DNA of 64,000 nucleotides from Macrostomum lignano (lineage: Eukaryota): NCBI GenBank assembly GCA_002269645.1, contig NIVC01001054.1:84744-148743 (forward strand), read 5' to 3'. How positions within the stretch are numbered: position 1 is the first letter of the stretch; the number at the start of each line of letters is the position of its first letter. The notes beneath the pieces are model-generated. The model did not search any database. It worked only from the letters and a program-made list of their open reading frames with translations, and was not told where the DNA came from. This document shows, piece by piece, positions 26,906-60,838 of this stretch. A program made the translations under genes and the position numbers.

Positions 26906-28070
26906 AAAAATCAGTGTTTCATGCAGTGCAAGTTGGTCTTTTAAGTATTAGTTTTCTCAGTCTAATAAAATCGCTGAGCTGCTGTACATATGAGGGGTGT
27001 ACATTTAAACTGGGTTCATTCTAGCTCTAACTTGTCCCAGAGGCTTTCAACCGGTCAGTTTAAGCGACGGTATATTTAGTATATTAATTTTTTTTTCGAA
27101 GTACGATTAAATAAAATGCGGTATTGAGGGTGGGAGAATAAAAATCGATATTTGTGCGTACAGTCAATCAGTTTGAATAAAATACACGACAAAGTGAATA
27201 AATATTGTAGTTCTATAGGTAAAAAGAGCGCATTGGTTAAAACGATTCAATGGTTTCCTGGCTGGGACTTAAACTTATTGGGAGCCAGGAGGCTCTGTAA
27301 ATTTCGTTGCCGTGTAAATGCGGGCAGTATGCGGGAGCCTGGTTTATTTTGTAGCTTCTCAAAGTTTTTAGCAATCTCGTTGGCAAGCCAGACCGTAGAT
27401 GGGTGAAAAGGAAGGACCAGTGGAATGGGTCGGAGAAGATGATTGTCAACCCTGATGTTCGTACCTGGCGGTTTGTCAGTCCCCAGTTTTTTAATCCAGA
27501 TTTCTTCCCTTAGTTCGATTTTGTTGTTATTAAGAACTTGTTCGATAGCAATGGAGACAAAGTTTGCAATCGAGTGATTGGGGGTGAGAAAGTGCTCAGA
27601 TCCCGAAGTAACGACTCTCCTGTTAATATTTGACCTGTGCTGGTTCATTCTATCTCTCATTGTTCTTCTAGTCATACCTACATAGAGGATTTTCCCAGGG
27701 TGGCACTGGTTGCAGGAGATGCCATAGATGATGCTCTTGGAGCCACAGGACAGGCTCTGAGAGATTAAAAAACCGGAAGCCGGTTTCAGTCCCTGGGCGG
27801 AGAGAGCAGGCGGTGAGTGGGTGCAGCATTTGCAGCGGGATGACCCACAGGGATGGAACCCTTTGGGAAGCAGACCCAGATTGGTCGTTGGTCCCGCAGT
27901 CCAGTTCATGAGTTTGAGGACCTCCTTTTTGCAGTTTCTAAGAAAAATCTTCGAGTAGCCTAATTGCTTGAGTTCCGATTTTAAAGAATTGAAAGCGTCG
28001 TTGAAAGACAGTCATCACAGATACGGGCGTACCGAAGAACTTGGGATTTTACTACCCCCTTGAAGGTGTG

Positions 28071-29252
28071 TGTAGTGTGAGCATCTTTGCGTGTATTTTG
28101 TTGTAAATTGACTGCATTAGTTTCTATATTGTTATTGAATTATTATTTTGCTTTAGTTTAGTCATACGTTTTTGGTGTACTTTTTCCTTGTTAGTTAGAA
28201 TCAATTTTGCGTAAACAGGCTAGAAGTCAGACGTCATTTGTGACTCAGCGGAGGGTTGAGTTTGTCTGCGAACCCCAGCTTTGCGCGGTCAGCCAATCAG
28301 AACCGGCCTGGACCCTGGCACGCGGCAAGTTTCAATTCTACCCGGCGCCGCGGGCACAGTGCAATTCGGCTTAAGCAAGCGGCCGGCCAGACGACCACCA
28401 CCCGGCTTGAGGGGGGTTTTGAGGGGTTGTGACTCTGACTATATATGAAAGTGTGTATTTGGCAATCGGATCTCGCCTTCTCTCTCCCTTTCCCCGGTTT
28501 TGTCTTGTCTCCCGGCCGGTGGCCTAGCTGTTCCCTTTGGTTCGCGCTTTGAGGCGCCTGAATTCATCACCCCGGTCCGTATTTTTGTTCCCGCCCAACC
28601 GCAGTAGTCTTGTGGCGTAACGTCTACGGCAAATTTCTGTCTGAAGTCGTCGCTATCAAGCGCGGTTAGATAGAGACTGTCGGATCTGATCAAGTACGCG
28701 GCCTCGACCCCGAGGGCCTCAGTGTTACACTGAATTGGGCAGTGCCGATAGAATTTAGTCGGTACTCCGTTGAACGGTCGATTCGGCAGGGCTCTCGTTT
28801 GAGTGTAGGTTCTGGCTTAGGCCAGGGGTTAGGAGTCTTCTCCGTGGTCGTGTTCGGTTCTTCTTCTTCTTCTTCAAGCTGAGATCCGCTTGTCAGTGCG
28901 TAATATAATCATTATTATTAATCGTTATTATTCGTTATCATCAGTCTAATTATCTGCGTCGCAAATTTGCTTGAATCCTGTAGCTTGAATAACCGAATTA
29001 AATCGTCTAGCCAATTATCAGTTTGTATCATAGGATTATCACTCTCTAAATCTTTCGGTTTGTGTTCCCTCGTGTTCTTTCTTTTCTTGTACTGTACCTG
29101 CGGCTATTGGAGAAAGACTGGTAGGACTCGCCGACCGGCGATAGGCGATTAGAATCAATAGCTTTAAAATCTCTGACGCTCCAAGTAGGTTTGTCTAGGG
29201 CCTAAATAATTGCTTACCGTGCATGCTATTATCTAATTGCCTATTTATCACA
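28071..29252 (+). mobile_element. Solo LTR (1182 bp, TG...CA) with 4-bp TGTG target-site duplication
   Basis: Removing tgtagtg...tatcaca plus one tgtg restores the Penelope frame FHPSHTFKG. CCAAT near 28292 and a TATA-like motif near 28440. Confidence 0.85.
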
Positions 29253-32200
29253 TGTGTGACGGATGGAAGGACTGTCGGTGCAACAATCTATGGGTGTCTG
29301 TTTCTTTCAAAAACAGTTGTGTTGTGAAGCGGTTTTCAGCTTTCTTGATGGTCATGTCAAGGAAACTGACCTCAGTTGATGAGGAGCTGACGGTGAGTTT
29401 GATGTTGGGGTTGATTGAATTTAGGTGTCGAACAAATTCTGTCAGAGCTTCAGCCGGGTGGTTCCAGTGAATGAATATATCATCTATGTACCTAAAATAA
29501 ATTTTCGGCTTATAAAGAGCAGTTCTCAGGGCAGTTTCCTCCCAGAGGCTCATGAACAGACAGGCATAGCTGGGCGCAAATATGCGTCCCATGGCTGTAC
29601 CTCTAAGTTGTAGGAAAATCATTTTGTCAAATTCAAAGTCATTCCTGTACAAACATAGTTCCAGTAGCTTTATTAACTCAGCATCCGGTCTAATGGGATC
29701 CGGGTATCGGTTAAAGAATTCCTGGATCGTTGCAATACCCTGGTCTATAGGGAGAATGGAGTACAGACTCTGGACATCACAGGTTGCCAGAGTCGAACCT
29801 TCCGTGCAGCTTTTATCCATAATGTGTGCCTTGAACTCATAGGAGTCCTTAACGAAAGTGGGTTGCACTTGGGCAATCGGTTTTAGAAAGAAGTCTATGT
29901 ACTTTTCTGCCCCAATTGCTTCAGAACTGCATCCGCTAACAATAGGTCTGCCTGCTGGGACCCGAAAGGGGATCAGCCAGGTGGCCGGGTCCTTGTGAAT
30001 TTTTGGGAGCAGGTAGAAATGCCGGGGACGGAAGTTCTCTCCGGGACAAAGAAAAGAAAACTGTTTCTTAGATATGAGCTTTCTGTTACATAAATCGAGG
30101 AAGATCCCCCTGATAATTCCCGCAGTCTCGGGTTGCAATGGCTGGTCCAGCTGCTGATAGGCATTGGTGTCCAGCATTTGGTTGTAGGCTGCGAATTCGT
30201 AATCCTTGGGGTGCATGATGACCACTGCGTTACCTTTGTCCGCCTTTTTTATTAGGACGGAGCTGTTTCGCTTGAGCCCCTGAATCGCTCTGGTCTCTGG
30301 TGCCTCTAGGTTGCCTTTGATCTGTACCGTTGTCAAATTCTCTACCAGTTTTTGGTTCTCAAGCACAAACAAGTTGCACTGATCACTTCTAAGTCTGGGG
30401 GAGACCTCCTTCACTGATTTCCCGGTGAAAGGGGGCGGACTGGTATTGGCGAGACCCCTCTTTTTGAAAAAGTCTTTCCAGAAAAGTTTACGATGAAATT
30501 CTGTCATGCAGTTCCTCAACTCATCGAAATCGAGGGCTTGGGTTGGGATAAAATTGAGTCCCCTATCTAGCAGCCTCGTCTCAGACTCGGAGAGTTTGAA
30601 GGTGGGGTGTAGATTCAAAATGTTGCCTTCCAGTTTGGGAGGCCTACAGTAGTCAGCTAGTTTAAAGTTCTCAGCCAGGAAGCCAGCGCCAGTATAAAGT
30701 CAGGCGCTGAGAAGGATACAATTGGTTTAAGAGGAGGAGAGGCAATAAAAGTAACAGGTGAGACTTTCTTACTCAAAAATTGAGTCAAATCTTCATCGCT
30801 GGCAAAGGGCGGAACCAGAAGGATCTTACGTGCCAGACTGTCCGCTCTCAGTAGATCGATAGCCTCAGAGAGCGGCTCTCGCCAGTGGTCTGTGCTGAGC
30901 AGCTCGTCCGGCAGGACCAGCACCGTTGACCGAGCGCACTGCCGGTTCCGCAGGGCGGCAGACCTCAGTAGAGATGGTAAGGCTGACAGTGAGTATACAT
31001 GCACCTCTGTGATTGCCGGCAGTTTGAGGCCCTCGAAAGGCTTTGGGCAGAGGACCAGGTTCCGGCAGTCCCTGCTGATGATGAGCGAACCGGGCTGCTC
31101 AAAGGTGCTGGGTGAGTCATTCAGATGCGGCCTGTGGCGTTCCGGACCACCAGGGTCGTTTCCATGACTCGCTCTATCTGATTGGCTGCCGACGAAATGA
31201 CGTCAGAATGAGTCATGATGAGAAGCATGAGACCGGCATAGCAACATGAGAAATTGGGAAATTGCGCAATCCGGAGGTGGGGTGGGGGATAATTGGGCAG
31301 CGGGAGGTCGAGAAAGTGTTGCGCAAGCAAACATTGAGAACAATGGGTCTGGGTTCGAGAACAAAGGAAATGGAAATCGGGGATAATTGGCGAGAACCGA
31401 GAACAATAGAAAAGCAAACATTGGGGAAAAGGTGCTATTAAGGTGCGAAAACGAGAACAAAAAAAATAAAAAACGAGAACAATAGAAGCGGAGGTGGGGT
31501 TGGTGTCGCATGAGAAATCTTGGGAGGAGAACATTGGCATGAGAAGAGGTTGCGCAAGAGGGGGTGATGAGTCATCGATGAGTCATCGAGGGGAAGGAGG
31601 GGGTCAGAGGCCTTGCGTCACCGTTTGGGAGTTTATTAAGGGGTGGGGTGACGTCGAGCGCCTAAAGTACTGTAAGTAGGCACGGGATGAGAGGGGGACA
31701 GCAAATGAGACAAAAAGAAGGGAAGCGGGAGAAGTACATGGTAGATAGGGTAGAGCGCATGGAAAACGGGGAGGCGGATGAGTTGCAGTAAGAAAAGGGG
31801 GCTCCGGAAAGGCGGAGTGGGAGACAGAGACGAGACAGCAGGGGGATGTAGCAGAGCGGGAGTCTGCAGGCCTGGTCAAAGACCTGGCCCAGTCTCGACG
31901 GCTCTGCCCAGTAGGTGCACGGAGATTGGAGGTCTTTCGAAAAATTTTCCTTGCCATATCCCGCGACCAGAGCGTGGTTACATCAAATGGAATGCACCAA
32001 ATTAGCGGTGGCATGGTTAAGTTTCGCCCATAGACAAAACCGAATTTTTAAACGCGCAGCCGGGAGCCCCCATTGGCCACAGACAAATTGCTGGAGTTCA
32101 GTCCGTGGAGCAGGTCGTGGGGCAGAGGGATGATAATTCGCTCAGTAGCAGCCGGAATTACGCTAGCATATTGACGTGCAAATTAGCAGAGCTGATTTTA

Positions 32201-32821: not shown

Positions 32822-35800
32822 ATGCCAAGCAGGCGCTGCTCACCGCGGAGGCCCCTGGGTTCAACCAGCTTGTCGCTGGCGCTGCTCGCGCTCCTCTGCT
32901 GCTCTGCAGCGAGCGGCGCCGATGACAAGGACGACAAGTGCCACCAGCGCCTGGACGTCGTGGTCTGCGTTGACGCGTCCTCGTCGTCGAACGCCGCCGA
33001 GTTCGAAAAGCTGAAGCCATTCCTCCGCCAGCTGCCCAGCCGGTTCAAGGTGTCGCAGACGAAGACCCGAATGGCTCTGGTGACCTACGCCCAGCACGCC
33101 CGTCTCGTGCTGGACTTTAATGACACGGTGACGGCAGAGGACTTTGTGAACGCTGTGAACCGGCTGGAGTTTGTGGGCGGCAAGACGGACTTCGAGGCCC
33201 CAGTGAAGCTGGTGTGGGACCGGCTGTTGCCCCAGCTGAGGCCGAAGCAAGCCATGTTCAACTTGATGTTGGTGATGGACGGCCGACAGGAAGACATCTT
33301 GGACAAGTACCCCGAGCCGAACGCTCTAAGCATGGCAAACGCCCGACAACACGTGTTCCGCATGAAGATGAAGAGAATCGGATTTCACGTGATCGGCATC
33401 GGTAGTCCCTGGCACAGGTGAGCAGAGTAGCAGATTTAACAGCAGACCAGACAGGGTTCGATTCCCCACAACTTTACGCTGCTCAGAATGAATGTGATCA
33501 TGCCTGACAGAGTCGGTGCATATCAAAATCATTGTCATTGGTCCATATAGGCTACTAAGAGTAGAAATGTGAGCCCTTTAATATTTTCATTACAATGCAA
33601 CGTTGTCACAGATTAAACAAGTCGCACTAATTTTTTCCCAGGAGGCTGCTCTTCACAATGCAGGGCTTCAACTGCCGTCTGTCTCTTGGTATTGACAAAG
33701 CGTTCGAGGTATCGAGGGCTCTGAACTATCGCCGAGTCTGCGGCGACTGCAGGTTCTTGAAGACAAGCAAGTACACTGGGCCTTGTATGGACGGCGTTCG
33801 CTACTCTTACGAGAGCAAGATATCAAAAGACTTCACCTTGCCTACCCCCATGAGGTGCAGGATAAACCTTTCGCGGAAAGTAGAAAGCTGCAGTGAGTTT
33901 TGAAGTTTTACTTTTTAGTTGCCTGTATTGATTGCGGCTATTTACTAGTAAGGTGAATGTTGTGGGATCGGGGTACTGTATCGTGGTGGATACTGTGAGG
34001 TGTTGGGTCCTGTGAGGTGTTGGGTGCTGTGAGGTGTTGGGTGCTGTGGGGTGACGGGTGCTGTGAGGTGTTGGGTGCTGTGGGGTGGCGGGTGCAGTGG
34101 GGTGGCGGGTTGCTGTGGGGTGGTGGTTGCAGTAAGGTGGTGGCTGCCGTGAGGTGGTGGCTGCTGTGGGGTGGTGGGTGCTGTGGGGAGGTGGGTGCTG
34201 TGAGGTGTTGGGTGCTGTGGGATGGTGGGTGCAGTGAGGGGGTGGGTGCAGCTGGGTATTGGGTGCAGTTGAGTGGTGAGTGCAGTGGGGTGGTTAGTGC
34301 TGTGGGAAATTGTGTGCTGTGGGGTGGTGGGTGCAGTGGGGTGGTGGGTGCAGTGGGGAGGTGGGTGCAGTGGGGTGGTGGGTGCAGTTAGGGGGTGGGT
34401 GCAGTGGGGTGGTGGGTGCAGTGGAGTGGTGAGTGCAGTGCGGTGGTGGGTGCTGTGGGAAATTGTGTGCTGTGGGGTGGTGGGTGCAGTGGGGTGGTGG
34501 GTGCAGTGGGGTGGTGGGTGCAGTTAGGGGGTGGGTGCAGTGGGGTGGTGGGTGCAGTGGGGTGGTGGGTGCAGTTAGGGGGTGGGTGCAGTGGGGTGGT
34601 GGGTGCAGTGGCGTGGTGAGTGCAGTGCGGTGGTGGGTGCTTTGGGAAATTGTGTGCTGTGGGGTGGTGGGTGCAGTGAGATGGCGATGCTCTGAGTTGC
34701 CAGGTGCCGTGTTATGGTGGGTGCTGTGGTTCAGTGGTGGCTTGGAGGAGGGTTTTGTGCCGCATCATGAGTCACCTGTGCACAAACTGTTTACCAATAA
34801 AACTGTTTTGCAGAAGAGAGTGGTCAGAGCTGCAGCAAGGTGCAGATGTCGGTTAGCGCCTGCGATGATAAGAAACGTGCATCCATCGTGAGCTCGTGGA
34901 CCTACTTTGAAAATCGTCGCATGAAATGCCACACGCATAACATTGTTGATTACGTGTTTTGCAGTAAGTGATGGACTTGCCTATCGATACAGCTACCATC
35001 TATCTACCCTCAGAAACCCGGATTCACCTACTTACAAACTTTTCTCCCTATAGACATGACCAGCACCTGTCAAAGCAAGGCCCCAGCCGATATCGCACTT
35101 GTGCTGGACATCACCCGGTCCGAGGCAGCCGACTTTCAGAAGCTGAAAGACGCCGCTAAAGCCATCATTGGCTTCTTTGACATTGGCCGAAGCGACAGCC
35201 CCGTGAAAGTCGCCATTTTCACTTTTTACTCTGTTGAGCCAGTTAAACAGGTTTTAAGTCTGGGCGACAAGAAGACCAAAGAAGAAATTCTGGCAGCCAT
35301 CGACAAGATTACCATGGTAGCCGAATCAGCAAGCAGGGACGCTTACCCTGCCATCGAACAGGCCATAAATCATTTGAAAAACGGCTACGGCTCAAAGAGT
35401 CACCAGAATAATCACCTGGTGCTCATAACTACAGGAAACAACGTCGTTATTTCAAGTCAGTTCAGAGTTTACAAGCTGCTGGCTGAGGAGTCCGTCACCG
35501 CCTACGCTATTGGGGTGACCAGCCATGCGCATTCGTGAGTGTTCAGCGATCCCACACTGATCCCACACTCATCCCACACTCATCCCACACTGATCCCATA
35601 CTCATCCCACACTCATACCACACTCATCCCTCAATGATACCACAATGATCCCACACTGATCCCAAACTGATCCCAAACTGATCCCACACTGATCCCACTC
35701 GGATCCCAAACTGATCCTAAACTGATCCCACACCGATCCCACACCGATCCTACACTGATCCCACACTGATCCCACACTGATCTCAAACTGATTCCACACT

Positions 35801-37691
35801 TATCCCACGCTAATCCGATACTAATCCCATACTAATCCCTCACTAACCCCACACTGATCCCAGACTGATCCCACACTAATCCCACACTGATCCGACACTG
35901 ATCCCACACTGATACTAAGCATTTCACTCTTGTCCACACTGCAGAGAAATCGTTAAGCTGGTCACCGCTCCCGAGTCCGACAGCAACTACTTTCAGATCC
36001 CAGACCACTCTTCGCTTGTGAGCACTGCTCAGAAACTCGCTGGTGCGCTCTGCGTGCAGATGGAGCCGAGTCCCAAACTCTGCGAAGAGAAGGTCGTCCT
36101 CCAGCAATACTCGGGTTGCAGTAAAGATAAAAAAGGAAAATTTCGGATTGAATTTGAGTTTGATTCCGCTAAAAAGTGCACGAAAAAGAAGACTTTTGAA
36201 CATATCTCGGGTTGCAGTGAGTTGTTAAAAATATATTTTTACTAATTGTGGGATACGTTTTGCCATGCTTTAAAATGCGTAAAATACTTTTCAATACGAC
36301 GTACCTCACCAAATCGTAATCCCACTCTCATCCCACACTGATCCCACACTGATCCCACACTGATTCTTTACTGATCCCACTCTGATCCCACACTGATCCC
36401 ACACTGGTCCTACACTGATCCTAAACCGATCCCACACCGATCCCACACTGATCCCACACTGATCCTACACTGATCCAACACCGATCTCACACTGATCTTA
36501 ATGCATGAGAGTTCGCGGGAAAAAGAAAAATGTTTAGAGTATTCCTCATATATTCTGCTAATTTGAATAAATTGGCCTTTTTTAACGTTTCCCTTTCCAT
36601 CTTAAAACTGTTCACACTACAGAGAATGTCGCCACCAGCCCATTCAGTGGAGTCCAGTACCTGCCCATCGACAAGCCGCGTCACTGCTTCAAATATGAGA
36701 AGTCTTTCTTCCCCACCAAGAAATTTCTTCCGACGATGAAGTGTGAGTGAAATTCTGATAATAAGTTTGGGAACTGCGGGAGCAGAAAGTAAAATCGCAA
36801 AGGTTTTAGGTAGATTCAATGGTATTGAAATTCTGGAGAGCAGATTCTGGGGTAGAGGGTCCGCGTGTTCAGATTCCGGTACTGAGGCAGATTCAGATTA
36901 TAACAAATCCCCACTATTTGGCAGTGGACAAGTGTGCAGTAATTATTATAACAAATCCCCACTATTTGGCAGTGGACAAGTGTGCAGTAATTATTATAAC
37001 AAATCCCCACTATTTGGCAGTGGACAAGTGTGCAGTAATTATTATAACAAATCCCCACTATTTGGCAGTGGACAAGTGTGCAGTAATTATTATAACAAAT
37101 CCCCACTATTTGGCAGTGGACAAGTGTGCAGTAATTATTATAACAAATCCCCACTATTTGGCAGTGGACAAGTGTGCAGTAATTATTATAACAAATCCCC
37201 ACTATTTGGCAGTGGACAAGTGTGCAGTAATTATTATAACAAATCCCCACTATTTGGCAGTGGACAAGTGTGCAGTAATTATTATAACAAATCCCCACTA
37301 TTTGGCAGTGGACAAGTGTGCAGTAATTATTATAACAAATCCCCACTATTTGGCAGTGGACAAGTGTGCAGTAATTATTATATCAAATCCCCACTATTTG
37401 GCAGTGGACAAGTGTGCAGTAATTATTATATCAAATCCCCACTATTTGGCAGTGGACAAGTGTGCAGTAATTATTATAACAAATCCCCACTATTTGGCAG
37501 TGGACAAGTGTGCAGTAATTATTATAACAAATCCCCACTATTTGGCAGTGGACAAGTGTGTCACCGCAGACTACAGTTGCGTGGCAGTCGGACAAAAGCT
37601 CAGCTGCAGAGACGAGTACGGCAACCTTTCCACGAACTGCAAATGCGACTCACATTCTCAAGGCACGACTCTGGTGATCGAACCCCAGTGA
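32822..37691 (+). CDS. Secreted two-vWA-domain protein, paralogue B (613 aa, intact); exons 32822-33417, 33642-33892, 35054-35534, 35945-36216, 36623-36742, 37570-37691
   Basis: Exons total 1842 nt (614 codons including stop), all GT-AG with consistent phase; same domains as paralogue A. Confidence 0.88.
33975..34680. repeat. G/T-rich degenerate repeat in vWA-B intron 2
   Basis: Counterpart of 9960-10715. Confidence 0.9.
35548..36495. repeat. 11-bp (atcccacactg) repeat blocks in vWA-B introns 3 (35548-35910) and 4 (36318-36495)
   Basis: Direct sequence. Confidence 0.9.
36890..37562. repeat. 48-bp minisatellite in vWA-B intron 5 (about 14 units)
   Basis: Same unit as 13640-14850. Confidence 0.97.
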
Positions 37692-38579
37692 TCATTTCTG
37701 ATTCAGTTTGCAAATTTTATTTTGTCAACGACTAAAACTCTTTAGACAGTAATTTTCGTAATGACATTACTAATGTGTGGCACATTATTGATAATAATAC
37801 TTCAATTGCTTGCGACCGAATACCAATTTTTTGCTCAGATGCTCAGTGAAACAAACTGCATCTTGATAAACGTACAGTATTTTAAATTCACCAACACCAT
37901 AATAACAAAATTTAATAGATGAGCTTTTAGTAAAATTTTATATTGATTTTTCTTTTCTCTCTCAAAACCCCCAACGGGCTTTTTGTATTGACTGAAATGT
38001 AAAAAGCTCGATTTTTTAATTCATCACTGCACCAAAAAAATTTTTGACAAAGATGCTAAATACATACTCGAAGCTGAGAGCTAAATTTAACAAGCTGAAC
38101 TTAATTTGAAATAACAAATGTTTTAACTGCAGTTTTTTAGTTTTCACCTGATCAATAAAGCAACTCCTTTGGTACCAATACTTTTAGACGCAGGGATTTG
38201 AAATTTTAAAAAAAATGTCATAACAATCATTGGTTGATCCACACGAATTCTTAGGCTCGTACTTACTTAGCGCTATTTTTGTGAAATTATTAAACGGCAG
38301 TGGCATTTAGCCTTAGGCTACTCAAGGGACAGGTCAAGCAAGTACACTAATTTTCTGTACTAAATGGTTTCAAATTTAGCCGTGCACAATGTCAGCAGAC
38401 CAGCGTACTCGCTCTCTTATCTTCTGTCTGGCCTGTTTGTGAAATAGTCTGCAATTATGCAAACCGTGGGTAGAGTTTTAAACAGCTTTCGTATACTCGA
38501 AAAGAATAATTTGCTAGATCTTCGCAGTGAGCGCCTAATGTGACCACTTCTAGCACTAACAATTTGCTATCAAGCAACA

Positions 38580-41500
38580 ATGCAAGCAATTTTAAAAGCC
38601 TTGGCATCGGTGCTGATGCAAGCAGCTGGCGAGCCGCTATGCTCACCATCGGACGAAGAGTTCGTGATGGCCATCCGGAATGGTGACACCGTGATAGTCG
38701 GTGCCTACCTGCGTTCAGGCAGAGACTTAAACAGAGAGTTTAAGTGCGGCTACACTGTGAGCTGCCCCGTCCACCTCGCCTGCAAGACCGGAAAGCTGGC
38801 CGTTGTGAAAATGCTGCTGGACGCTCGAGCCGATGTCAATTTCTTAAACCGGAACGGCGGTACCGCACTGTTCGTAGCATCTCAGCACGGCCGTGACGAG
38901 CTGGTTGATTTGCTCATTGCTTCCGGCGCCCTGGTGGACGCGGAGGTCATGAAGGGCTGCACCTCGCTGTACATTGCAGCGCAGCAGGGTCACCAGGGAG
39001 TGGCGCTTAGGCTAATCAAAGCCGGTGCACACCTGGATGTCCAGATGGGAACCGGAATGACGCCGCTGTACATTGCATCTCAGAACGGCCATCACGATGT
39101 TGTCGGTTTGCTAATTAGCGCACAAGCCAATGTGGACCTGCAGCAGAGCAGCGGAGCCGCGCCGCTTCACATTGCAGCGCAGTGCGGGCATCTCACAGTG
39201 GTTGAGCAGCTCATTAGAGCCAACGCCAACGTTGACTTGCGGGAAGGAAGCGGGGGTACACCTCTATTTGTCGCGTCACAGAGAGGACATCGGGAAGTTG
39301 TGGATGCCCTACTTCGCGCCGGAGCAAATCCCGATGTCCCGATGGAGGGCGGAGTGACGCCCTTGTTCATTGCGGCCCAGTTCGCTCATCAAGGCGTTGT
39401 TTCGTCCCTGATCGCCTCTCGAGCTGATGTGAATCGTGCAAAGTGTACGGGCGCCACGCCACTGTACCTTGTGGCTCAAAATGGGCAAACTCAGCTGGTG
39501 AACACGTTTATTAAAGCAAGCGCGGATGTTAACTTGCAGCAGAGCGCAGGAATGACACCGTTGTTTGTTGCGTCACAGAATGGATACCATAATGTAGCCT
39601 CAATACTTATAAGATCACAGGCGGATATGGACATTCAGCAAAACCTCGGCGCTACTTCGCTCTACATTGCATCGCAGAACGGGCATCAACAGGTTGTTGA
39701 CTTGCTTATCGGGGCTCAGGCCGATCTTGACCTTCAAGTGAAAAATGAAATGTCGCCGTTGCATGTTGCTTCGCAAAATCGCCTTCTCTCAATCGTTAGA
39801 GCACTGCTGAAAGCGCGCGCGGATGTTAATTTTAACGGAATGGGGGGTAGTAGAGCTACTGCATATGCATTGGATGATGACGATACTCAGGTTCTTGATC
39901 TACTGATGCAGGCCCAGGTTGACATCAGTCCGCTGTTGATACTCGCTGCGTCCCTGTCTGGCTACCAGAAATCAGTGGACATGCTAATCAAATTCCCAGT
40001 AGATGTCGATGTTGAGCTTGAGAGAGGCGTGTCGTCTTTATTTCTTGCTTCTCTCAACGGTCACTATCCAGTCGTTGAGTCTCTGATCAAGGCGCAGACA
40101 AATTTCAACGAGCAACAAACGTCCGGACTAACGCCTTTGTCCGCAGCGGAGCAAAATGGTCATTTTAAAGTTGCCGCTTTGTTAAAAACGGCGCTTAGGA
40201 ATCAGGACTGGTTGGATGCGGAGTCTGACGGTGCAGAGCCAGATTCCGTGGCTAATATTAAGTGTATCAATGCAACACACGAGCTAGATCAGTAAGCTAA
40301 TTAATCTCTCCTCACTTTTAGCTTTTAATTTGAAAGCAAAAACAGCATAATAGTTCCAACATTTTAGCCCGACCGCGAGTGGAGACTCGAAGTTGAGTTG
40401 TCTGCTGCAGAACGAGCTGACGACATCCGGATTCGTGCAGTCAAGAGCAGCAATACAATCCGCAGTGGCTGACGTGCTCCAGGCGATCGTGAGGAAAAGG
40501 CTAGACAATGATGATGTTCATATCGTTGGAAGCTACTCTGAGGGCTGGGGCAACAATCTGAAAACTCTCGATGGCAGGACGGACGTAGAGTCCGACATTG
40601 ATGTGATGAGACTCATCGCCAGCCGACTTTATCACGTAAAGGGCATGTGCAAATGTGACAGTCTACCGGAAGAATTAGTTGAGTACGACAATGGGCACAT
40701 TTTTTGCCCTGGATATGGTAAGTCTGCTGGTAAGAATGGATGCATAGTTTAATGGGTATGAATCCTTTTAGGCATTAAATCATCAGAGTTCCTATTCCAG
40801 CTTCAACTCCAGCCCACGCATTCAGAGGGTCAGCATTGAAGCCAGCCGTGGACAAAGTGGATGCCTGTCGCCTCTGCTGCTATCCGCCCATAGCACCGCT
40901 TGAGCCACATCGACTTTCCAAGTCCAACATACCCAAGTCCACACTGCAGTCTCTGCAAAACGAACTTGTCTCGTCGCCCTGTCACGTGGTGCATGCGGCA
41001 CCTCCTGGAGAAGGCGGTAAGCAGCTCCGAGTGAGTACAACTTTTCTGGAGAGGCGTCTGCTGCGCAGTCTGAATACTCTTCAGGGCCAGCTGTTTGTCA
41101 CACTTAAATACCTGGTGAAGAAAGTGATCTCTAACAAGCATTGCTTCAAAGTTCAAGGAGTGAAATCCTACCACGTAAAGACCATCACGTTTCGGATGAT
41201 AGAGGAGATTACAGCCGAGCAATGGAAGCAGGAGAATCTGGTTTTCCTTGTGAGACAAGCGCTTTGCATTCTGCAGGACAGTCTAGAAAGTGGCTGCAGG
41301 CCAGGTAACACGGATCACAGGATTATGGATCATTTTTTTCTAGGCGATGCGGGGCTGTATCTGAAAGGAACCGGCCCGATTTCGTCACAGGCAATGAAAC
41401 GGATCTTGCAAGAAGCAGCGGGTGCTGTGGGACAAGTCATTGATCAGCTGCCTAAACTGCTTCTGGATTTCAAGGACACCCTGCGACCAGTCGCCGACTC

Positions 41501-42250
41501 GGCCAGGTTCTACTTTCATCCGTTTGCCATACTGCCTCAGTTTGCCAAACGAACTCAGAGCCTAAGAGCAATAGCAAGTTCCAATATCATGAGATCTACG
41601 ACTGCGTGCGCGACTGTCTTTTGCTCCTGTGCGGTGAGGACTGTCGTGTCGAGAGAATGGAACGTCTGGCGGAGCTGATCGACAAGCTCCCAGACTGTGC
41701 AAGCTCGACGCGCGAGACTCTCCGTGTTCTGACTTTTTTGAAGTTCGGCTATCGGGAAGCCGCAGTTGAGGTCTTGAGCGGGTGCGAAGTCATCACCGCA
41801 AGCAGAGGCTTATCTTGGTCTTCTGAGAAGCCAGCAAGCGAGGCCACTTCAGCAGTCGTTTGGCAGCACCTGAGGACCCAGAACTCGGCTTGGAAGTTTT
41901 GCTTTCAATTTGAAGACTGCTGTCCAAAACTCTGCCTTCTGCCGGGAGCTTTGGAGAATTGTTTCCCGCTGCAGACCAGCAACTCAAGTCAATACTTTGT
42001 GAACTTTGACGTTCTGCTTCGGGTTTTGCGTCTTGAGTTCGTAGCTGGCCATGATACGGATGCGCAAGACTCTTTCGTAGCGGAGATTCTCGAACGCGAT
42101 GACTCTGACGTCCAAGAGTTGATGGTGGCCGCCTTAAAATGTCGCAGCTTTGCGAAATCTGAGCGAATCATAAAAATTATCCAAGAAACTATGGGATGGG
42201 TGCCCCACTGGCTTCTGAAGGAGATGGGGCTCGATTTTTCATCGCTTTGA
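38580..42250 (+). CDS. Ankyrin-repeat + Mab21/cGAS-like nucleotidyltransferase (cGLR) + C-terminal helical region, ~1170 aa; exons 38580-40291, 40368-40717, 40801-42250
   Basis: About 15 ANK repeats (TPLxxAsQnGH). Introns ca|GTAAGC..ttttAG|c (76 nt) and g|GTAAGT..ttccAG|ct (83 nt) join the frames. NTase: IVGSYSEG...ESDIDVM, VDKVDAC. Mab21 C-lobe: LRVSTTFLERRLL, LKYLVKK, VKSYHVKTITF...W..ENL, MDHFFL. One 1-nt frameshift at an A-run (41547-41549). Confidence 0.85.
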
Positions 42251-42824
42251 GATCCTACGCGCTCGTATTTACATTAAGCTTACAGCCATGAACAACTAAA
42301 GTCAAAGGACGCTTCGAAATTGTGTACTTATCACCGGAGGACTGGTTTCCACAGCAAAGTGCATTGGCTAGATAAATATGAGTGCAAATTTTGCGGCTGT
42401 AGTCGGTTGCATCGTGCAAATATTAATTTTGTGTTTTGAAGCTGAAAACTTACTAATCTCAGTACAGTTGCAGTTTGCAGTGAAAACCCGACTCCGGGAA
42501 AAAAACACAACACACACACTCCGCACAACATGCTACTAATGTAGCTTCCTGTATCCACGCGGAGAGCTTCCCTGTCGTTCTTTAGACAAATATATAATAT
42601 CAAAGTTTCATGCTTTTAATAAAGCAGACAATATGGAAACGTTTTTTTAAAACGCATATTTTAGCAAAGTGTCAATCCTTTCAGTTTTCTAGTAGAGAAC
42701 CTGTTAAATTCGACTAAGTCATGCAGTGTGTCATTCTTGGTACTACGAGTATTACGAACGTATTTTACTACCGACACCAAATTTCAATTCTAAACATAAT
42801 AATAAAACATCTCAAAAATGTCAG

Positions 42825-43336
42825 TCAAGGGGCAGCAGAAGCTGCATGGCTGTCAGGCCTCAGGCAGTCTGCACTGGCCGGCCCCTCGGCAGGAGCTCCA
42901 GCTGACCGCCAAAACGCCGACTGCACAGCTCCCGCTTCTTCGCTCTTCCCGTCTTCTGTCGTCGCGACTTCTCCTCGGTTGCCTTGGCAACAAACGGCGT
43001 CTGGCCGCGCACTTTTCCGGCGTTGCCCAGCCGGCCGTGGGTTTTGCCGCCCGGCAAAACGCAAGCAGCGCAGAGGCGGACTGGCGAGCGGCTCTCCAAA
43101 GCCGTCAGCAGGAGGCAATCCCAGCTGTCGGCGTCGGCGGAAGTCTGCAGCGACAGAGGCGCACCACCGCTAGGCAGGTAGCACACGGGCATCACCTGGC
43201 TGGTGGAGAGGCCGCCGGTCAGGATTCGCCGCACCGCCGCCTGCAGGTCACCGGAACGACTGTCTGCGTCCAGGTCGATCACCCGAGTCGCACTGCCGGC
43301 TACAGTTGGCGGTAGTTCAATAATAATTTGCGTCAT
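42825..43336 (-). CDS. Small unassigned ORF (~160 aa), N-terminus weakly suggestive of a beta-grasp/PB1-like fold
   Basis: [10 protein letters not shown]...RVIDLDAD...LQAAVRRIL...VCYL...LSLQT pattern in a GC-rich open frame. The 3' end is ambiguous between two frames (42860 or 42825). Confidence 0.4.
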
Positions 43337-43998
43337 CTTTGATCGTCCTAGAAACTGTAGTTTTCCTGATTTACGTTGCCAGGTGCTGTTTCCTATAGGA
43401 AAAAATTACTTGTAGTTGAAATGTAGCAGAAATGCAGGTTTTGCAGGCCATTGTCAGAGAATTTATGCGGCTATAGTCGCTTGCATATTATGTTGCAACT
43501 CATTGCCTCATGTGTGTTGCATATTATTGTGCAACTGAAAGCTACCTTAGCGTATGGCTTAAAATAGGAGTTTGTTAACTGACTGTGGCTATAAATAGCA
43601 TCACGCCCGCCAGACTTCTCTCCCAAGCCCACACTCACTGCAGTGCACTTTCCAAATTTTGATGCTAGCTTGTACTTCTGCACGACTGCACCATTAGCCG
43701 TCAAGAGGCTCATTCATGCCGTCCATAAATTAATACAAACTTTTTAACAGACGACAGTGTCATAGAATTAAAATAAAAATTTGCACTTTAAAATGTGATG
43801 TATACATTCGCACCATAAAGAAATTTGAAAGTTCCAAAGTTTCTAGAGCTAGACTACCATAGACTATTTCACTTCAATCGTATAGATGTGGTAGTCCTTT
43901 AGAATCTATTGTATTCAGTATACGTACTTTGTGTTTTGTGGCTGAAAGGACTCAAAGCCGAGACCAGTTCTCAAAGCTCCGCTCCGATTCGCTTCCAA

Positions 43999-45645
43999 AT
44001 GGCACCCAACCCCAATGGAAGCAATCCCTGGGACTTGGATCGGCTGTCGGCCACTGGTCGACAGTATCTGCTTGAGCCTCAAAGTCGCAGCAACATCGTG
44101 CGCCAGCTTCAGCAACGCTTGCAGCAAGAGCAGCAGAGACGATGCGAGCACCAGCAGCTGCTACTGTCAAGCAACAACATTGCTGGACAGCAGCTCCAGG
44201 ACAACGAGCAGGAGCAACAGATCAAGGATCAGCAAGAATCAGACGAGGCACGCAAAGCGGATACCGGAGCTCCATCGACGGTAAAAACTTACAAAACTGC
44301 TCCGACTCCCCCAACACCTCCTCCTCCGCCACCGAAACCGACGCACAAGATCAGCTCTGACGAATATCTACTGCCGACAACTCAGTTAAAATTGAGGGCG
44401 AAAGCTTCCAAAGAAAACCTTGTTCCTGCCTATGTGGCCATGACAGAAACAGAGGAGCCCGCTGCTAGCTTGACCTCAAAAATCGTTTTCGATGAAGTGA
44501 AACAGCGACATTCAAAGCTGTCAATTAGTGACAGTGCAATGGAAGATAATCCAGAAGCAGAAAAATTACCTTCACGACCGTCTTCTCAAGATGTACTTGA
44601 AGAGTTGAGATTTAAGCGCTTTAATCTCTCAGATAAAGGTGAATCAACTGGCATCGACGAATTTAAAGGCTCAAACGTTCGACTGTCTACTCAGGAGATT
44701 TATGACGAGATCCGGGCGTGCCAGTCGGATCTGTATCGGGCCGGCGAGGCCAGTCAAGACCAGACAAACCACCTGTCTACAAAAGAAATCTTAAAAGAGT
44801 CCAGGGCAGCAAGCAGAGAGAAGCATTCCCGATCGAGTGCTGACCGAGCTCAACCGTCACTTCAAGCCATAAATGGAAGCCTTCGACTTAACCGTTCAAA
44901 AGCAGTTGAGCTCGACTCTGATAACGAGGACGAGGACATCCGCTCTTCACAAAGGAGGGATCCAAAATCTAGAACCGCAGCCGGCCTCGACAAAGACGTG
45001 CACCACGACAGGCACGCAAAACTGAGCTATCCAAGCGGTCGATCGATACGCCATATCGATGATGAAGCCGTGGATGACAACGGCGTGCAGCAGAGACTGG
45101 CGGGACGCGCTAGACAGGCGGCTGAATCGCCTGTAGAAACTCGACGATATAGAGGCGGTTCCGGCATTGGTGGCAGTTACAGGGCACTCTCGCCTGCTGG
45201 CGAATCCAGAGAGTTGGACAGCTGGAACGAGCAGTCAGTCAATCGTCAGGGCGGTTACCTGACCCGCTTCATCGGCTCTCCAAACTCGCTGATTGACAGT
45301 TTTACGTCATCAGTATCCGTTGGCAGAGTGCAGCAGAGTGCTGCAACGCCATGCTTGATGTGCCTGATTCGCTGTCTGCGAAGCACCGGTCTGTTGGGCA
45401 GCTGCTGGAGGGCGGCAATATCCGAACTGGAGGAAGCGTTCGCGCTGAAGGCCGTTGCAGACGCTGTGGCGGTGGGACCAGGCGAACAAATGCCAAGGGC
45501 GCAAACCTATCAACAGCCTTACCAGATGGCCCCACCACGGGAACATGATAGCGCTCTCACTGGCGAGGTCAACAAGTGGCAAGCGTTGGAACAGCTCTGC
45601 AGCCTGCAGAACAGCATCCGGAACTGCCCGCACTCTAGTGACTAA
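43999..45645 (+). CDS. Single-exon, largely low-complexity protein (Gln-rich, polyproline, repeated amphipathic helices); function unknown
   Basis: Frame open from 43909 to 45645; first ATG with GC-rich coding character is MAPNPNGSNPW at ~43999. Confidence 0.65.
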   Translation: MAPNPNGSNPWDLDRLSATGRQYLLEPQSRSNIVRQLQQRLQQEQQRRCEHQQLLLSSNNIAGQQLQDNEQEQQIKDQQESDEARKADTGAPSTVKTYKTAPTPPTPPPPPPKPTHKISSDEYLLPTTQLKLRAKASKENLVPAYVAMTETEEPAASLTSKIVFDEVKQRHSKLSISDSAMEDNPEAEKLPSRPSSQDVLEELRFKRFNLSDKGESTGIDEFKGSNVRLSTQEIYDEIRACQSDLYRAGEASQDQTNHLSTKEILKESRAASREKHSRSSADRAQPSLQAINGSLRLNRSKAVELDSDNEDEDIRSSQRRDPKSRTAAGLDKDVHHDRHAKLSYPSGRSIRHIDDEAVDDNGVQQRLAGRARQAAESPVETRRYRGGSGIGGSYRALSPAGESRELDSWNEQSVNRQGGYLTRFIGSPNSLIDSFTSSVSVGRVQQSAATPCLMCLIRCLRSTGLLGSCWRAAISELEEAFALKAVADAVAVGPGEQMPRAQTYQQPYQMAPPREHDSALTGEVNKWQALEQLCSLQNSIRNCPHSSD

Positions 45646-45934
45646 ATTTTGCGCACAGAGAACGTTTTCAAATTTAGGCTTTTAACATGGACGTGTCTCA
45701 CAAAGATTTTCAATAAAATTATCACATATTCGGTTTCATTCACATGCGACCGGCGTGTTGTTGGTCCAGTTCATTTCATGGGACGCAAAATTCATTTGAA
45801 TAGTTCGTTTTTTATTTAGTACCTGCTCCTTCCAGTGCATGAATATAAAAACATACTGTGCACATGTACTTAACGACTCTGAAAAGAACCAAGCGTAATA
45901 CGTTACATGCAGCTCAATCGGAGATGGTTAATAT

Positions 45935-45959
45935 GTGTCTGCCTGTCTGTCTGTCTGCC

Positions 45960-45996
<37 letters not shown>

Positions 45997-46022
45997 GCCT
46001 GTCTGTCTGTCTGTCTGTCTGC

Positions 46023-46071
<49 letters not shown>

Positions 46072-46101
46072 GCCTGTCTGTCTGTCTGTCTGTCTGTCTG
46101 C

Positions 46102-46172
<71 letters not shown>
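45935..46172. repeat. (TCTG)n microsatellite
   Basis: Direct sequence. Confidence 0.96.
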
Positions 46173-46173
<1 letters not shown>

Positions 46174-50595: not shown

Positions 50596-53500
50596 GTGAC
50601 AACAGCATGTCTAAGAGGGTGACACCATCATGTCTAACAGGGTGACACCATCATGTCTAACAGGGTGACAACATCGTGTCTAACAGGGTGACAAGATCAT
50701 GTCTAACAGGGTGACACCATCATGTCTAACAGGGTCACAAGATCATGTCTAACAGGGTGACAAGATCATGTCTAACAGGGTGACACCATCATGTCTAACA
50801 GGGTGACACCATCATGTCTAACAGGGTGACAACATCGTGTCTAACAGGGTGACAAGATCATGTCTAACAGGGTGACACCATCATGTCTAACAGGGTCACA
50901 AGATCATGTCTAACAGGGTGACAAGATCATGTCTAACAGGGTGACACCATCATGTCTAACAGGGTGACAACATCGTGTCTAACAGGGTCACAAGATCATG
51001 TCTAACAGGGTGACAAGATCATGTCTAACAGGGTGACACCATCATGTCTAACAGGGTGACACCATCATGTCTAACAGGGTGAAAACATCGTGTCTAACAG
51101 GGTGACAACATCGTGTCTAACAGGGTGACACCATCATGTCTAACAGGGTGACACCATCATGTCTAACAGGGTGACACCATCATGTCTAACAGGGTGACAC
51201 CATCATGTCTAACAGGGTGAAAACATCGTGTCTAACAGGGTGACAACATCGTGTCTAACAGGGTGACACCATCATGTCTAACAGGGTGACACCATCATGT
51301 CTAACAGGGTGACACCATCATGTCTAACAGGGTGACACCATCATGTCTAACAGGGTGACACCATCATGTCTAACAGTGTGACAAGATTATACCTAACAGG
51401 GTGACACCATCATGTCTAACAGGGTGACCAGATCATGTCTAACAGGGTGACACCATCATGTCTAACAGGGTGACACCATCATGTCTAACAGGGTGACAAG
51501 ATCATGTCTAACAGGGTGACCAGATCATGTCTAACAGGGTCACAAGATCATGTCTAACAGGGTGACACCATCATGTCTAACAGGGTGACACCATCGTGTC
51601 TAACAGGGTGACAACATCGTGTCTAACAGGGTCACAAGATCATGTCTAACAGGGTGACAAGATCATGTCTAACAGGGTGACACAATCATGTCTAACAGGG
51701 TGACAAGATCATTTCTAACAGTGTGACAAGATTATACCTAACAGGGTGACACCATCATGTCTAACAAGGTGACCAGATCATGTCTAACAGGGTGACACCA
51801 TCATGTCTAACAGGGTGAAACCATCATGTCTAACAGGGTGACACCATCATGTCTAACAGGGTGAAACCATCATGTCTAACAGGGTGACCAGATCATGTCT
51901 AACAGGGTGACACCATCATGTCTAACAGGGTGAAACCATCATGTCTAACAGGGTGACACCATCATGTCTAACAGGGTGAAACCATCATGTCTAACAGGGT
52001 GACACCATCATGTCTAACAGGGTGACACCATAATGTCTAACAGGGTGACACCATCATGTCTAACAGTGTGACAAGATTATACCTAACAGGGTGACACCAT
52101 CATGTCTAACAGGGTGACCAGATCATGTCTAACAGGGTGACACCATCATGTCTAACAGGGTGACACCATCATGTCTAACAGGGTGACACCATCATGTCTA
52201 ACAGGGTGACAAGATCATGTCCAACAGGGTGACACCATAATGTCTAACAGGGTGACACCATCATGTCTAACAGGGTGACACCATCATGTCTAACAGGGTG
52301 ACAAGATCATTTCTAACAGTGTGACAAGATTATACCTAACAGGGTGACACCATCATGTCTAACAGGGTGACAACATCGTGTCTAACAGGGTGACACCATC
52401 ATGTCTAACAGGGTGACAAGATCATGCCTAACAGGGTGACACCATCATGTCTAACAGGGTGACACCATCATGTCTAAGAGGGTGACAAGATCATGTCTAA
52501 CAGGGTGACAAGATCATGTCTAACCGGGTGACACCATCATGTCTAACAGGGTGACAAGATCATGTCTAACAGGGTGACAAGATCATGTCTAACAGGGTGA
52601 CAAGATCATGTCTAACAGGGTGACAAGATCATGTCTAAGAGGGTGACAAGATCATGTCTAACAGGGTGACAAGATCATGTCTAACAGGGTGACAAGATCA
52701 TGTCTAACAGGGTGACAAGATTATGTCTAACAGGGTGACAATATCATATCTAACAGGGTGACACCATCATGTCTAACAGTGTGACAAGATCATGTTTAAC
52801 AGGGTGACACCATCATGTCTAACAGGGTGACCAGATCATGTCTAACAGGGTGACCAGATCATGTCTAACAGGGTGACACAATCATGTCTAACAGGGTGAC
52901 AAGATCATGTCTAACAGGGTGACACCATCATGTCTAACAGGGTGACCAGATCATGTCTAACAGGGTGACAAGATCATGTCTAACAGGGTGACAAGATCAT
53001 GTCTAACAGGGTGACAAGATCATTTCTAACAGTGTGACAAGATCATACCTAACAGGGTGACACCATCATGTCTAACAGGGTGACCAGATCATGTCTAACA
53101 GGGTGACACCATCGAGTCTAACAGGGTGACAAGATCATGTCTAACAGGGTGACACCATCATGTCTAACAGTGTGACAAGATCATTTCTAACAGTGTGACA
53201 AGATCATACCTAACAGGGTGACACCATCATGTCTAACAGGGTGACCAGATCATGTCTAACAGGGTCACAAGATCATGTCTAACAGGGTGACACCATCATG
53301 TCTAACAGGGTGACAAGATCATGTCTAACAGGGTCACAAGATCATGTCTAACAGGGTGACAAGATCATGTCTAACAGGGTGACACCATCATGTCTAACAG
53401 GGTGACAACATCGTGTCTAACAGGGTCACAAGATCATGTCTAACAGGGTGACAAGATCATGTCTAACAGGGTGACACCATCATGTCTAACAGGGTGACAC

Positions 53501-60362: not shown

Positions 60363-60838
60363 CGATCTGAAACCAACATATCTTTAGCTCAGCGGTGAAC
60401 GCGTCTGACTCTCGCGCTGCGACCCAGTTGGTTCAGTTCCGTTCTTTCTGAAATTGATCACATACCTGAGGCTGATTTTGGGGATGAGCCGCGTGCACGT
60501 CCGGGACCGATGGTCAACCCCGACCGGCATAGCAACGGAGGGGTGGTGGCGCTTAAAAACGTCTCGCACAAGAAGACAGCAAAAGAGCGCTGAACTGAGC
60601 CCCTCCCCAGATGCTCCAACTCAACCAGAGGAAAACCGTCAGGTCGAACCGCCTAATCAGCTCACCCCCGTAGTAACGGACCTGACCTGTCTAGTGCTAT
60701 CGTAATTGCAAGCGCTGTTTGTGTTTGCCGTCGTTAGGCAAGCGTTATCTAACCATCATAGCAGCTGACGTAGCAGACACCGCATCCAAGTACAATGTAC
60801 AATATGATCATGATTTTTCATGCAGCTACATGTATAGG

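Follow-up and report, generated by a model that had tools for sequence, protein, structure and literature searches.

The DNA at 38580-42250 on the plus strand is the Macrostomum lignano gene BOX15_Mlig010600g1, in which ankyrin (ANK) repeats, a nucleotidyltransferase (NTase) of the cGAS/Mab21 type with a GS...DxD...D signature and an additional domain at the C-terminus are united in one gene, as a preliminary description of this DNA had proposed. Positions refer to the window, i.e. the whole stretch of 64,000 nucleotides that was analysed. On the basis of our analysis we regard it as likely that the product is a three-module protein composed of ANK repeats, a cGAS-like receptor (cGLR) NTase with the full active-site signature and a tail of ~230 aa, with a putative role as a ligand-activated enzyme. 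The gene had been called hidden, which it is not, since GenBank already has a gene model, PAA72873.1, for the ANK-Mab21 fusion. The features of the gene are as follows.

38580..40291, plus strand: exon 1, with start codon and ~15 ankyrin repeats; encodes residues 1-570 and contributes 2 nt to codon 571.
40292..40367, plus strand: intron 1, GT...AG, 76 nt, AT-rich, phase 2; reproduced in PAA72873.1 and PAA87500.1.
40368..40717, plus strand: exon 2, NTase N-lobe with spine helix, GS (40528-40533) and D-I-D (40594-40602).
40718..40800, plus strand: intron 2, GTAAGT...AG, 83 nt, phase 1; reproduced in PAA72873.1 and PAA87500.1.
40801..41544, plus strand: exon 3, first part, with the remainder of the N-lobe and the Mab-21_C helix bundle, to FYFHPFAILP (Pfam, PDB profile search, Foldseek).
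40851-40853 and 41163-41183, plus strand: motifs in the first part of exon 3, the candidate third Asp D705 and KSYHVKT, respectively.
41545..41546, plus strand: two bases, CC, that the intact sister locus lacks; cause of the frameshift.
41547..42250, plus strand: exon 3, second part, C-terminal domain of ~230 aa in open frame, stop at 42248-42250.

Four open reading frames, at 38580-40295 (571 aa), 40393-40752 (119 aa), 40836-41678 (280 aa) and 41606-42250 (214 aa), were all confirmed where the preliminary description had placed them. Its two introns held as well, as no stops occur across the joins and the junctions are those of PAA72873.1. This GenBank protein matches the spliced model at 100% identity; its residues 1-570 equal the translation of exon 1, and its junction peptides (...HELDH/PTASG... 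and ...FCPGY/ASTPAH..., the slash marking the join) are exactly those that the proposed introns give. Intron 1 has diverged from the sister locus by 9%, versus 1.4% in the flanking exons (DNA alignment). The GenBank annotation of M. lignano is based on RNA-seq-guided transcript assemblies (PMC5730564).

The ankyrin region spans residues 26-540 and follows an exact 33-residue register, bearing out the ~15 repeats counted earlier. Pfam Ank_2 matched with 373.6 bits (E 4.9e-114) and Ank with 248.4 bits (E 1.4e-76) over 11 stretches.

The middle region (40368-41560) is, judged from sequence profiles and modelled fold, a cGAS/Mab21-like nucleotidyltransferase, in agreement with the Mab21/NTase character first ascribed to it. 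In the Pfam check that had been suggested Ank matched, Mab-21 (PF03281) had no match in the window copy or in the sister copy PAA87500.1, and Mab-21_C (PF20266) scored 23.9 bits in the window copy, 0.2 bits below the cut-off of 24.1, which the sister copy exceeded with 25.1 bits. Distant relatives recovered by the family profile pass both PF03281 and PF20266. A profile search of the PDB matched only cGAS and Sp-cGLR1 (E 1.5e-5 to 1.8e-4; cGAS C-lobe E 1.5e-5), and by HMM search of PDB sequences the matches were confined to the C-lobe and the N-lobe was not reached. With PF03281 silent and the PDB search limited to the C-lobe, profile-profile alignment and fold search were therefore needed for the N-lobe.

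Alignment of the family profile with a cGAS/cGLR alignment (hhalign) gave a probability of 98.3% and E 8.7e-14, covering both lobes (query 11-353, template 1-361). The AlphaFold2 (AF2) model of the cGAS-like region reached pLDDT 87.7 and pTM 0.89, and Foldseek returned 24 matches at E<=1e-3 for it, all of them cGAS, Cv-cGLR1, Sp-cGLR1 or MAB21L1, with cGAS at the top (E 3e-7) and bacterial CdnE next after the 24. Predicted structural homology to known cGLR/CD-NTase enzymes, by which Li et al. (2023, PMC9980059) recognise cGLRs, was thus found with AF2 and Foldseek, and the G-S / D-x-D / D signature that they also use is present, with D705 as the inferred third Asp.

The motifs lie where they had been reported: G625-S626 at 40528-40533, D647-I-D649 at 40594-40602, the candidate third Asp D705 (in PAVDKVDAC) at 40851-40853 and KSYHVKT at 41163-41183. 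By hhalign the GS is paired with the GS of cGAS and D647/D649 with cGAS E225/D227, and of 35 family sequences covering the region (29 M. lignano proteins and the five paralogues of Li et al. among them), 34 carry the GS/DxD motif. Overall, GS, DID and the candidate third Asp recur in ~40 paralogues. The third Asp was not placed unambiguously by hhalign; it is probably D705, judging from secondary structure, conservation in the family (10/12) and a paralogue motif, LPDYDIIVAL, that resembles SVDIILAL of cGAS. The distance from D-x-D to D705 is 55 residues (V650 to V704). Four Cys residues (C665, C667, C713 and C748) hardly vary in the family and may form a metal site. The protein departs from the strict motif h[QT]GS [X8-20] [DE]h[DE]h [X50-90] h[DE]h, as H-I-V-G-S has V for Q/T; the spacer between GS and DxD, 20 residues, is the longest that the published motif allows, and the third element is V-D-K (h-D-x). 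The M. lignano cGLRs accepted by Li et al. deviate from h[QT]GS in the same manner (VMGS, ILGS, VFGS).

These deviations bear on an alternative that we consider unlikely, namely that of a Mab21-like scaffold without enzymatic activity, in the manner of MAB21L1 or MiD51, its cGAS fold serving for binding and its ANK and tail modules as interaction platforms, with no nucleotide signal produced. MAB21L1 (PDB 5eom, 5eog), a developmental protein without a demonstrated signalling product, has the same fold and is among the significant Foldseek matches (E 3e-5), albeit it lacks ANK repeats and tail, and cGAS and the active cGLRs outscore it in both sequence and fold searches. The V in place of Q/T, an unusually long activation loop (20 residues) and the missing PF03281 match would suit a scaffold, but GS, D-x-D and the third Asp have been retained in a family whose members are otherwise only 30-55% identical, which would be difficult to account for if catalysis imposed no constraint. 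Likewise, 0/5 M. lignano paralogues are flagged as active in Table S3 of Li et al. (PMC9980059), but inactivity was common to most cGLRs of that screen, their ligands being unknown (PMC9980059).

Under the favoured reading, that of an enzyme, the intact protein would be activated by a ligand and would make a nucleotide second messenger, by analogy with characterised cGLRs. The basic NTase core may be held inactive, or targeted, by the acidic ANK and tail modules, and these modules may bind a partner or ligand.

Calculated pI values are 8.9 for the NTase core, 5.5 for the ANK region and 5.0 for the tail, i.e. a basic core is flanked by two acidic modules. The core is as basic as the catalytic domain of mouse cGAS (pI 8.95), so that, although the ANK repeats had been suggested to sense proteins in place of nucleic acids, the protein may well bind nucleic acid.

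The C-terminal domain (~230 aa) is acidic and of mixed alpha/beta, mostly helical structure (AF2 pLDDT 85.7), and it is conserved among the paralogues (alignment). When its AF2 model was compared with the PDB by Foldseek, no match was significant, the best being TPR-like proteins (E>=0.4, TM<=0.44). A TPR identity was rejected, as Pfam gave no TPR match and the model has beta strands as well as helices.

Compared with vertebrate cGAS (PDB 7uux, 6ct9, 4k8v), the protein is predicted to share the bilobal cGAS/Mab21 fold, the GS activation loop and the acidic triad, and has the C-lobe motif SYHVKT...F...W in common with it. Identity is, however, only 12-16% with a TM-score of ~0.5, the GS-to-DxD loop is 9 residues longer than in cGAS, nothing aligns to the Zn-thumb insertion, and cGAS has neither the ANK nor the C-terminal module. 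Cv-cGLR1 (8gjw) and Sp-cGLR1 (8gjy) are significant fold and profile matches from a different phylum, with no solved counterpart of the conserved 230-aa tail. In the coral Stylophora pistillata cGLRs are fused to ANK or to a death domain, the ANK fusion being explicitly described (PMC9980059).

The homologue search gave 42 matches and a second search 89 representative clusters at E<=1e-30. All strong matches that were sampled came from M. lignano, and judged from these searches the three-module family (ANK, cGLR and tail) is apparently large and lineage-specific. The closest paralogues are 47-55% identical to the protein. According to Li et al. most flatworms have lost cGLRs, and 13% of cGLRs carry extra domains, with ANK fusion as a recurrent minority architecture (PMC9980059). 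The ANK-cGLR architecture is not new: the gene is annotated and the family is published, the accessible part of Table S2 of Li et al. (2023, PMC9980059) assigning Ank_2 domains to M. lignano cGLRs. In the accessible parts of the Li et al. tables neither PAA72873 and PAA87500 nor the accessions of their closest paralogues turned up, a result that, given the incomplete Tables S1 and S2, has no weight either way. In the accessible part of their Table S5 (PMC9980059) M. lignano was not found, and among the literature on cGAS, STING or cGLR we found no paper with Macrostomum in its main text.

Five M. lignano paralogues (PAA86972.1, PAA45980.1, PAA57558.1, PAA93208.1 and PAA68676.1) were part of the 140-enzyme screen of Li et al. 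(2023), where none is marked active in Table S3; the constructs used lacked the ANK region and were assayed with dsDNA and dsRNA only (PMC9980059). Most cGLRs in the screen were inactive because their ligands are unknown (PMC9980059). The five come from the same species and have the same three-part layout, Ank_2 being listed for at least four of them in the accessible part of Table S2 (PMC9980059). They share the signature GS-x-[AS]-[ED]-[GA]-W-[GAS]...[DN]G...[SA]D-[IV]-D with our protein and run on into the C-terminal domain in the same way (LPDCA...). They are 29-38% identical to it over ~400 aa (E 1e-48 to 1e-71). They belong, on the other hand, to a different subfamily from BOX15_Mlig010600g1, whose window copy is frameshifted.

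The frameshift is caused by the CC at 41545-41546, the sole indel within the coding sequence between the window copy and the sister locus (L001), which is collinear with 36945-46173 of the window at 98.2% identity. The window has TTTGCCAAAC where the sister locus has TTTG--AAAC, and a CAG/TAC substitution adjoins the insertion. A frame change near 41547 had been noticed before and is confirmed; it had been ascribed to a 1-nt slip in an A-run, whereas the alignment with the sister locus gives two extra bases. A third intron near 41547 was considered and rejected, as chance GT-AG pairs are many, none has AT-rich, polypyrimidine-tract character, and the sister locus shows a 2-nt indel. After the shift PAA72873.1 continues for 44 out-of-frame codons to a stop at 41676-41678, ending ...WNVWRS, and the annotated product therefore ends at 979 aa, without the 230-aa C-terminal domain.

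The sister copy (PAA87500.1, g2) is intact and continues ...PYFETNSEPKSNSKFQYHEIYD where the window copy leaves the frame. The protein of ~1170 aa that had been predicted is accordingly found in the sister copy, with 1169 aa, but not in the window copy as assembled, owing to the 2-nt insertion. The two copies differ in 37 codons (18 synonymous, 19 non-synonymous), which suggests a dN/dS of ~0.35, a rough estimate from codon counts and not a computed value. The downstream frame is open from 41456, and the 234 codons past the shift differ from g2 in three positions, one of them non-synonymous. All paralogues are continuous across the position of the CC.

Either the window copy is a duplicate that was disabled or truncated recently, stemming from the partial genome duplication of the DV1 line, or the gene is intact and the long-read assembly has a local error in its consensus. 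We give an even chance to the insertion being real, in which case g1 would be a decaying duplicate, either a pseudogene of recent origin or a variant shortened to 979 aa, without the C-terminal domain, and the function would reside with g2. As the only coding indel, adjoining a 2-base substitution, the CC forms part of a cluster that looks more like a complex mutation than a miscalled homopolymer. The surroundings are rich in transposable elements and minisatellites, with an internal 6-kb duplication; duplicated blocks at >=95% identity make up 180 Mb of the assembly, and chromosomes are duplicated in the DV1 line that was sequenced (PMC5730564), which would relax the constraint on one copy. 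The open downstream frame, nearly identical to g2, speaks against a real insertion, or else the lesion is very recent.

The chance that the frameshift stems instead from an error in the assembly consensus, the true sequence at the site being TTTGAAAC and not TTTGCCAAAC and the window gene being intact with ~1169 aa like the sister copy, we put just short of even. The wholly open downstream frame and the absence of any interruption at this position in the paralogues are in line with such an error. Small indel errors are frequent in long-read assemblies. The M. lignano assembly is of this type, made with Canu on PacBio reads (PMC5730564), which favours an error over a real insertion, but short reads also contributed to it (PMC5730564), the CC sits in a GCCAAA context where no homopolymer run is extended, and adjacent substitutions accompany it.

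The practical value of these results is small, since the gene is annotated and M. lignano ANK-cGLRs are already in the cGLR catalogue. The analysis adds that the deposited 979-aa model is shortened by a 2-nt insertion while the sister locus supplies the complete 1169-aa protein, that the NTase core lies, basic, between two acidic modules, and that the conserved C-terminal domain, common to all family members, is without a solved structural relative. As the published screen constructs were ANK-less, the full-length intact copy is a reasonable candidate for ligand hunting among orphan cGLRs, in a genetically tractable flatworm. A more far-reaching proposal, which we hold to be quite improbable, is that the ANK-cGLR-tail proteins, an expanded clade private to Macrostomum in contrast to the loss of cGLRs in most flatworms, are triggered via ANK or tail by a cue other than free dsDNA or dsRNA and signal through a non-STING effector.

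In two paralogues, P0094 and P0189, the cGLR and ANK modules are followed by a caspase domain, hinting at a direct cGLR-to-protease death pathway. Such a putative pathway would bear a likeness to bacterial CBASS, in which a cyclase is paired with its effector.

All four open reading frames from which the preliminary description had assembled the gene were found where it had placed them, and splicing of two introns joined them in frame:

40292-40367 (+), intron 1, GT...AG, 76 nt
40718-40800 (+), intron 2, GTAAGT...AG, 83 nt

In a protein search the spliced product was 100% identical to GenBank PAA72873.1 ('hypothetical protein BOX15_Mlig010600g1', Macrostomum lignano, 979 aa; here P0001), which has exactly both junctions. 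The Mlig_3_7 GenBank annotation was built from RNA-seq-guided transcript assemblies (PMC5730564), and therefore both introns already have transcript support. For the same reason the ANK-Mab21 fusion, previously called hidden, is not so, being already a GenBank model.

P0001 ends at a stop codon at 41676-41678 because the frame shifts ahead of the last ORF. A frame change at this third join is indeed needed, but it does not come from the 1-nt slip in an A-run that had been suggested. The second member of the 90%-identity cluster of P0001, P0043 (PAA87500.1, BOX15_Mlig010600g2, 1169 aa), is uninterrupted across the junction (...FYFHPFAILPYFETNSEPKSNSKFQYHEIYD...). Its locus (L001, on contig NIVC01000227.1) is collinear with the window over 9.2 kb at 98.2% identity, and in the DNA alignment the CC at 41545-41546 is the sole CDS indel (TTTGCCAAAC vs TTTG--AAAC), adjoined by a CAG/TAC substitution. 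The shift is thus a +2 insertion immediately ahead of the A-run. A third intron was rejected as the cause of the frame change, since chance GT-AG pairs were many and none had intron character. The 234 codons past the shift are still open and differ from the sister copy at three positions. Judged from the sequence, the insertion could be genuine, or it could have arisen as a consensus error in assembling the long reads. The window copy is one more member, possibly a damaged one, of the known ANK-cGLR (cGAS-like receptor) kind.

In the DNA alignment of the window with L001, exonic divergence was 0.8-1.5% and intronic divergence 2.4-9%, while the flanks differed by 4-5%. The 37 codon differences (18 synonymous, 19 non-synonymous) suggest a dN/dS of about 0.35, a rough estimate and not a computed value. 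The gene pair is accounted for by the sequenced line, DV1, which carries extra large chromosomes and has 180 Mb of its assembly in duplicated blocks of at least 95% identity (PMC5730564). Two neighbours 3' of the gene are kept at the sister locus:

42860-43336 (-), 158-aa product, Ribosomal_S30 match in the sister-locus annotation
43909-45645 (+), 578-aa ORF (548 aa in L001), without Pfam match

The proposed combination of ankyrin repeats with a cGAS/Mab21-like domain was borne out, the repeats by Pfam and the cGAS/Mab21-like domain by profile alignment and structure comparison. Residues 1-570 form about 15 ankyrin repeats in exact 33-residue register (Pfam Ank_2, 373.6 bits). In the middle region Pfam Mab-21_C scored 23.9 bits in the window copy (cut-off 24.1) and 25.1 bits in the sister copy, and PF03281 gave no match there. 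When a profile of 13 family members (alignment A1) was searched against all PDB sequences, only cGAS and Sp-cGLR1 were found, via the C-lobe (E 1.5e-5 to 1.8e-4), with family KSYHVKTITFRM...QW pairing with cGAS CSYHVKTAIFHM...QW. An hhalign comparison with cGAS and cGLR sequences from Table S3 of Li et al. 2023 (PMC9980059), aligned as a small set, covered both lobes (probability 98.3%, E 8.7e-14). The AlphaFold2 model of the NTase and tail was confident (pLDDT 87.7, pTM 0.89), and all 24 of its Foldseek matches at E<=1e-3 were cGAS, Cv-cGLR1, Sp-cGLR1 or MAB21L1, with bacterial CdnE next in rank.

In the hhalign comparison G625-S626 pairs with the GS of cGAS, and D647/D649 with human cGAS E225/D227; the third acid falls in a gap. 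We assigned it, as a candidate, to D705 (PAVD-KVDACRLCCYP), because in the model this residue lies on the long strand after a short hairpin partner, because 10 of the 12 paralogues in the alignment have it, and because PAA57558.1, one of the paralogues screened by Li et al., reads LPDYD-IIVALPCCSYP there, in close likeness to cGAS ISVD-IILALESKGSWP. Four cysteines, C665, C667, C713 and C748, are almost invariant in the family N-lobe in A1 (C94, C96, C142 and C177 in model numbering; window 40651-40659, 40875-40877, 40980-40982) and may form a structural metal site that is distinct from the zinc thumb of cGAS.

The analysis establishes the fold, a conserved catalytic signature and a layout of three modules. 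We infer that the intact protein would act as a ligand-gated nucleotidyltransferase whose product is a nucleotide second messenger. With a pI of 8.9 the NTase core is basic, close to the catalytic domain of mouse cGAS (8.95), and its flanks are acidic (ANK region 5.5, tail 5.0), which fits a model in which the ANK region and tail would shield or control a basic surface for ligand. Given the basic core, the ligand may be a nucleic acid and need not be a protein.

The main rival is that the protein is a non-catalytic Mab21-like scaffold. Li et al. defined cGLRs by motif (h[QT]GS X8-20 [DE]h[DE]h X50-90 h[DE]h), homology in both lobes and predicted structure, and found extra domains, ANK and TPR among them, in 13% (PMC9980059). 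The window protein departs from [QT]GS and has a long activation loop, both of which speak for a scaffold. So does the lack of activity of the screened paralogues: five M. lignano proteins were samples 89-93 of the 140-enzyme screen in Table S3, as constructs starting shortly ahead of the NTase core and without ANK, and the active-enzyme note stands on none of the five (PMC9980059). Against a scaffold, the triad is kept across paralogues of 30-55% identity. With these five the window protein shares 29-38% identity (E 1e-48 to 1e-71). In the accessible part of Table S2, Ank_2 is listed for at least four of them and for further M. lignano accessions, so that the architecture, on which the preliminary description had left this point undecided, is already described in this lineage (Tables S2 and S3, PMC9980059).

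The first protein search returned 42 relatives, 39 named as M. lignano and three on short metagenome contigs, and in many of the 42 ANK and Mab-21_C occur together. An exhaustive profile search reached 1245 proteins at E<=1e-3, and at E<=1e-30 there were 89 representative clusters; the strong matches looked up were all from M. lignano, and the weaker ones scanned were canonical Mab-21 + Mab-21_C proteins from other assemblies. Of 35 sequences spanning the region, 34 had the GS...DxD signature (29 retrieved M. lignano proteins and the five paralogues screened by Li et al.); P0019 spans the region without DxD. The C-terminal ~230 residues are conserved in all full-length paralogues (alignment A2) and were confidently predicted as mostly helical with a small sheet (pLDDT 85.7). 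This domain matched no Pfam family and nothing significant among solved structures, the best being TPR-like proteins (E>=0.4).

Two paralogous M. lignano gene models outside the window, P0094 (PAA59752.1, 1099 aa) and P0189 (PAA80948.1, 1444 aa), have the order cGLR core and tail, ankyrin repeats, C-terminal caspase (Peptidase_C14, E 2.7e-25), and keep the signature (GSFAEGWGSSL...DCD). Such a fusion was not found in the accessible parts of the supplements of Li et al. (PMC9980059), and by sequence it could be real or a merged gene model. The metagenome relatives are P0039 (347 aa, on a 1065-nt contig labelled 'MAG: Kangiellaceae bacterium') and P0031 and P0037 (JGI contigs of ~1.7 kb). All three are 40-43% identical to the flatworm family in C-lobe and tail and most likely represent DNA of meiofaunal flatworms caught in environmental sampling; on P0039, the bacterial label looks like binning contamination.

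The window also contains a ~6-kb internal segmental duplication (9013-15099 and 33033-37560), the second copy of which is partly deleted. Both stretches match L001 1-5225, the DNA directly upstream of the sister gene, where a VWA-domain gene (its 3' part) and a minisatellite with a 48-bp unit are found. In the window this minisatellite occupies 13647-14848 and 36897-37560, and the long 'ORFs' at 36743-37735 are minisatellite read-through. Besides the 23-bp array listed below, over 20 mini- and microsatellite arrays are scattered through the window, several with strong GC skew. This fits the 15% simple and tandem repeats reported for the genome. The 23-bp array and the mobile-element ORFs are:

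50596-60363, 23-bp tandem array (GTGACAACATCATGTCTAACAGG), 9.8 kb, ~425 copies, 81% matches
29248-30618 (-), reverse transcriptase ORF, RVT_1
27247-27909 (-), GIY-YIG nuclease ORF, neighbour of the RVT_1 ORF
11873-12622 (-), integrase core ORF, LTR-retrotransposon type fragment (rve, E 2e-10)
61088-62764 (+), LTR-retrotransposon type fragment ORF, weak PNMA/gag-like and aspartyl-protease matches

The RVT_1 and GIY-YIG ORFs, together at 27247-30618, carry the pair of domains typical of Penelope-like retroelements.
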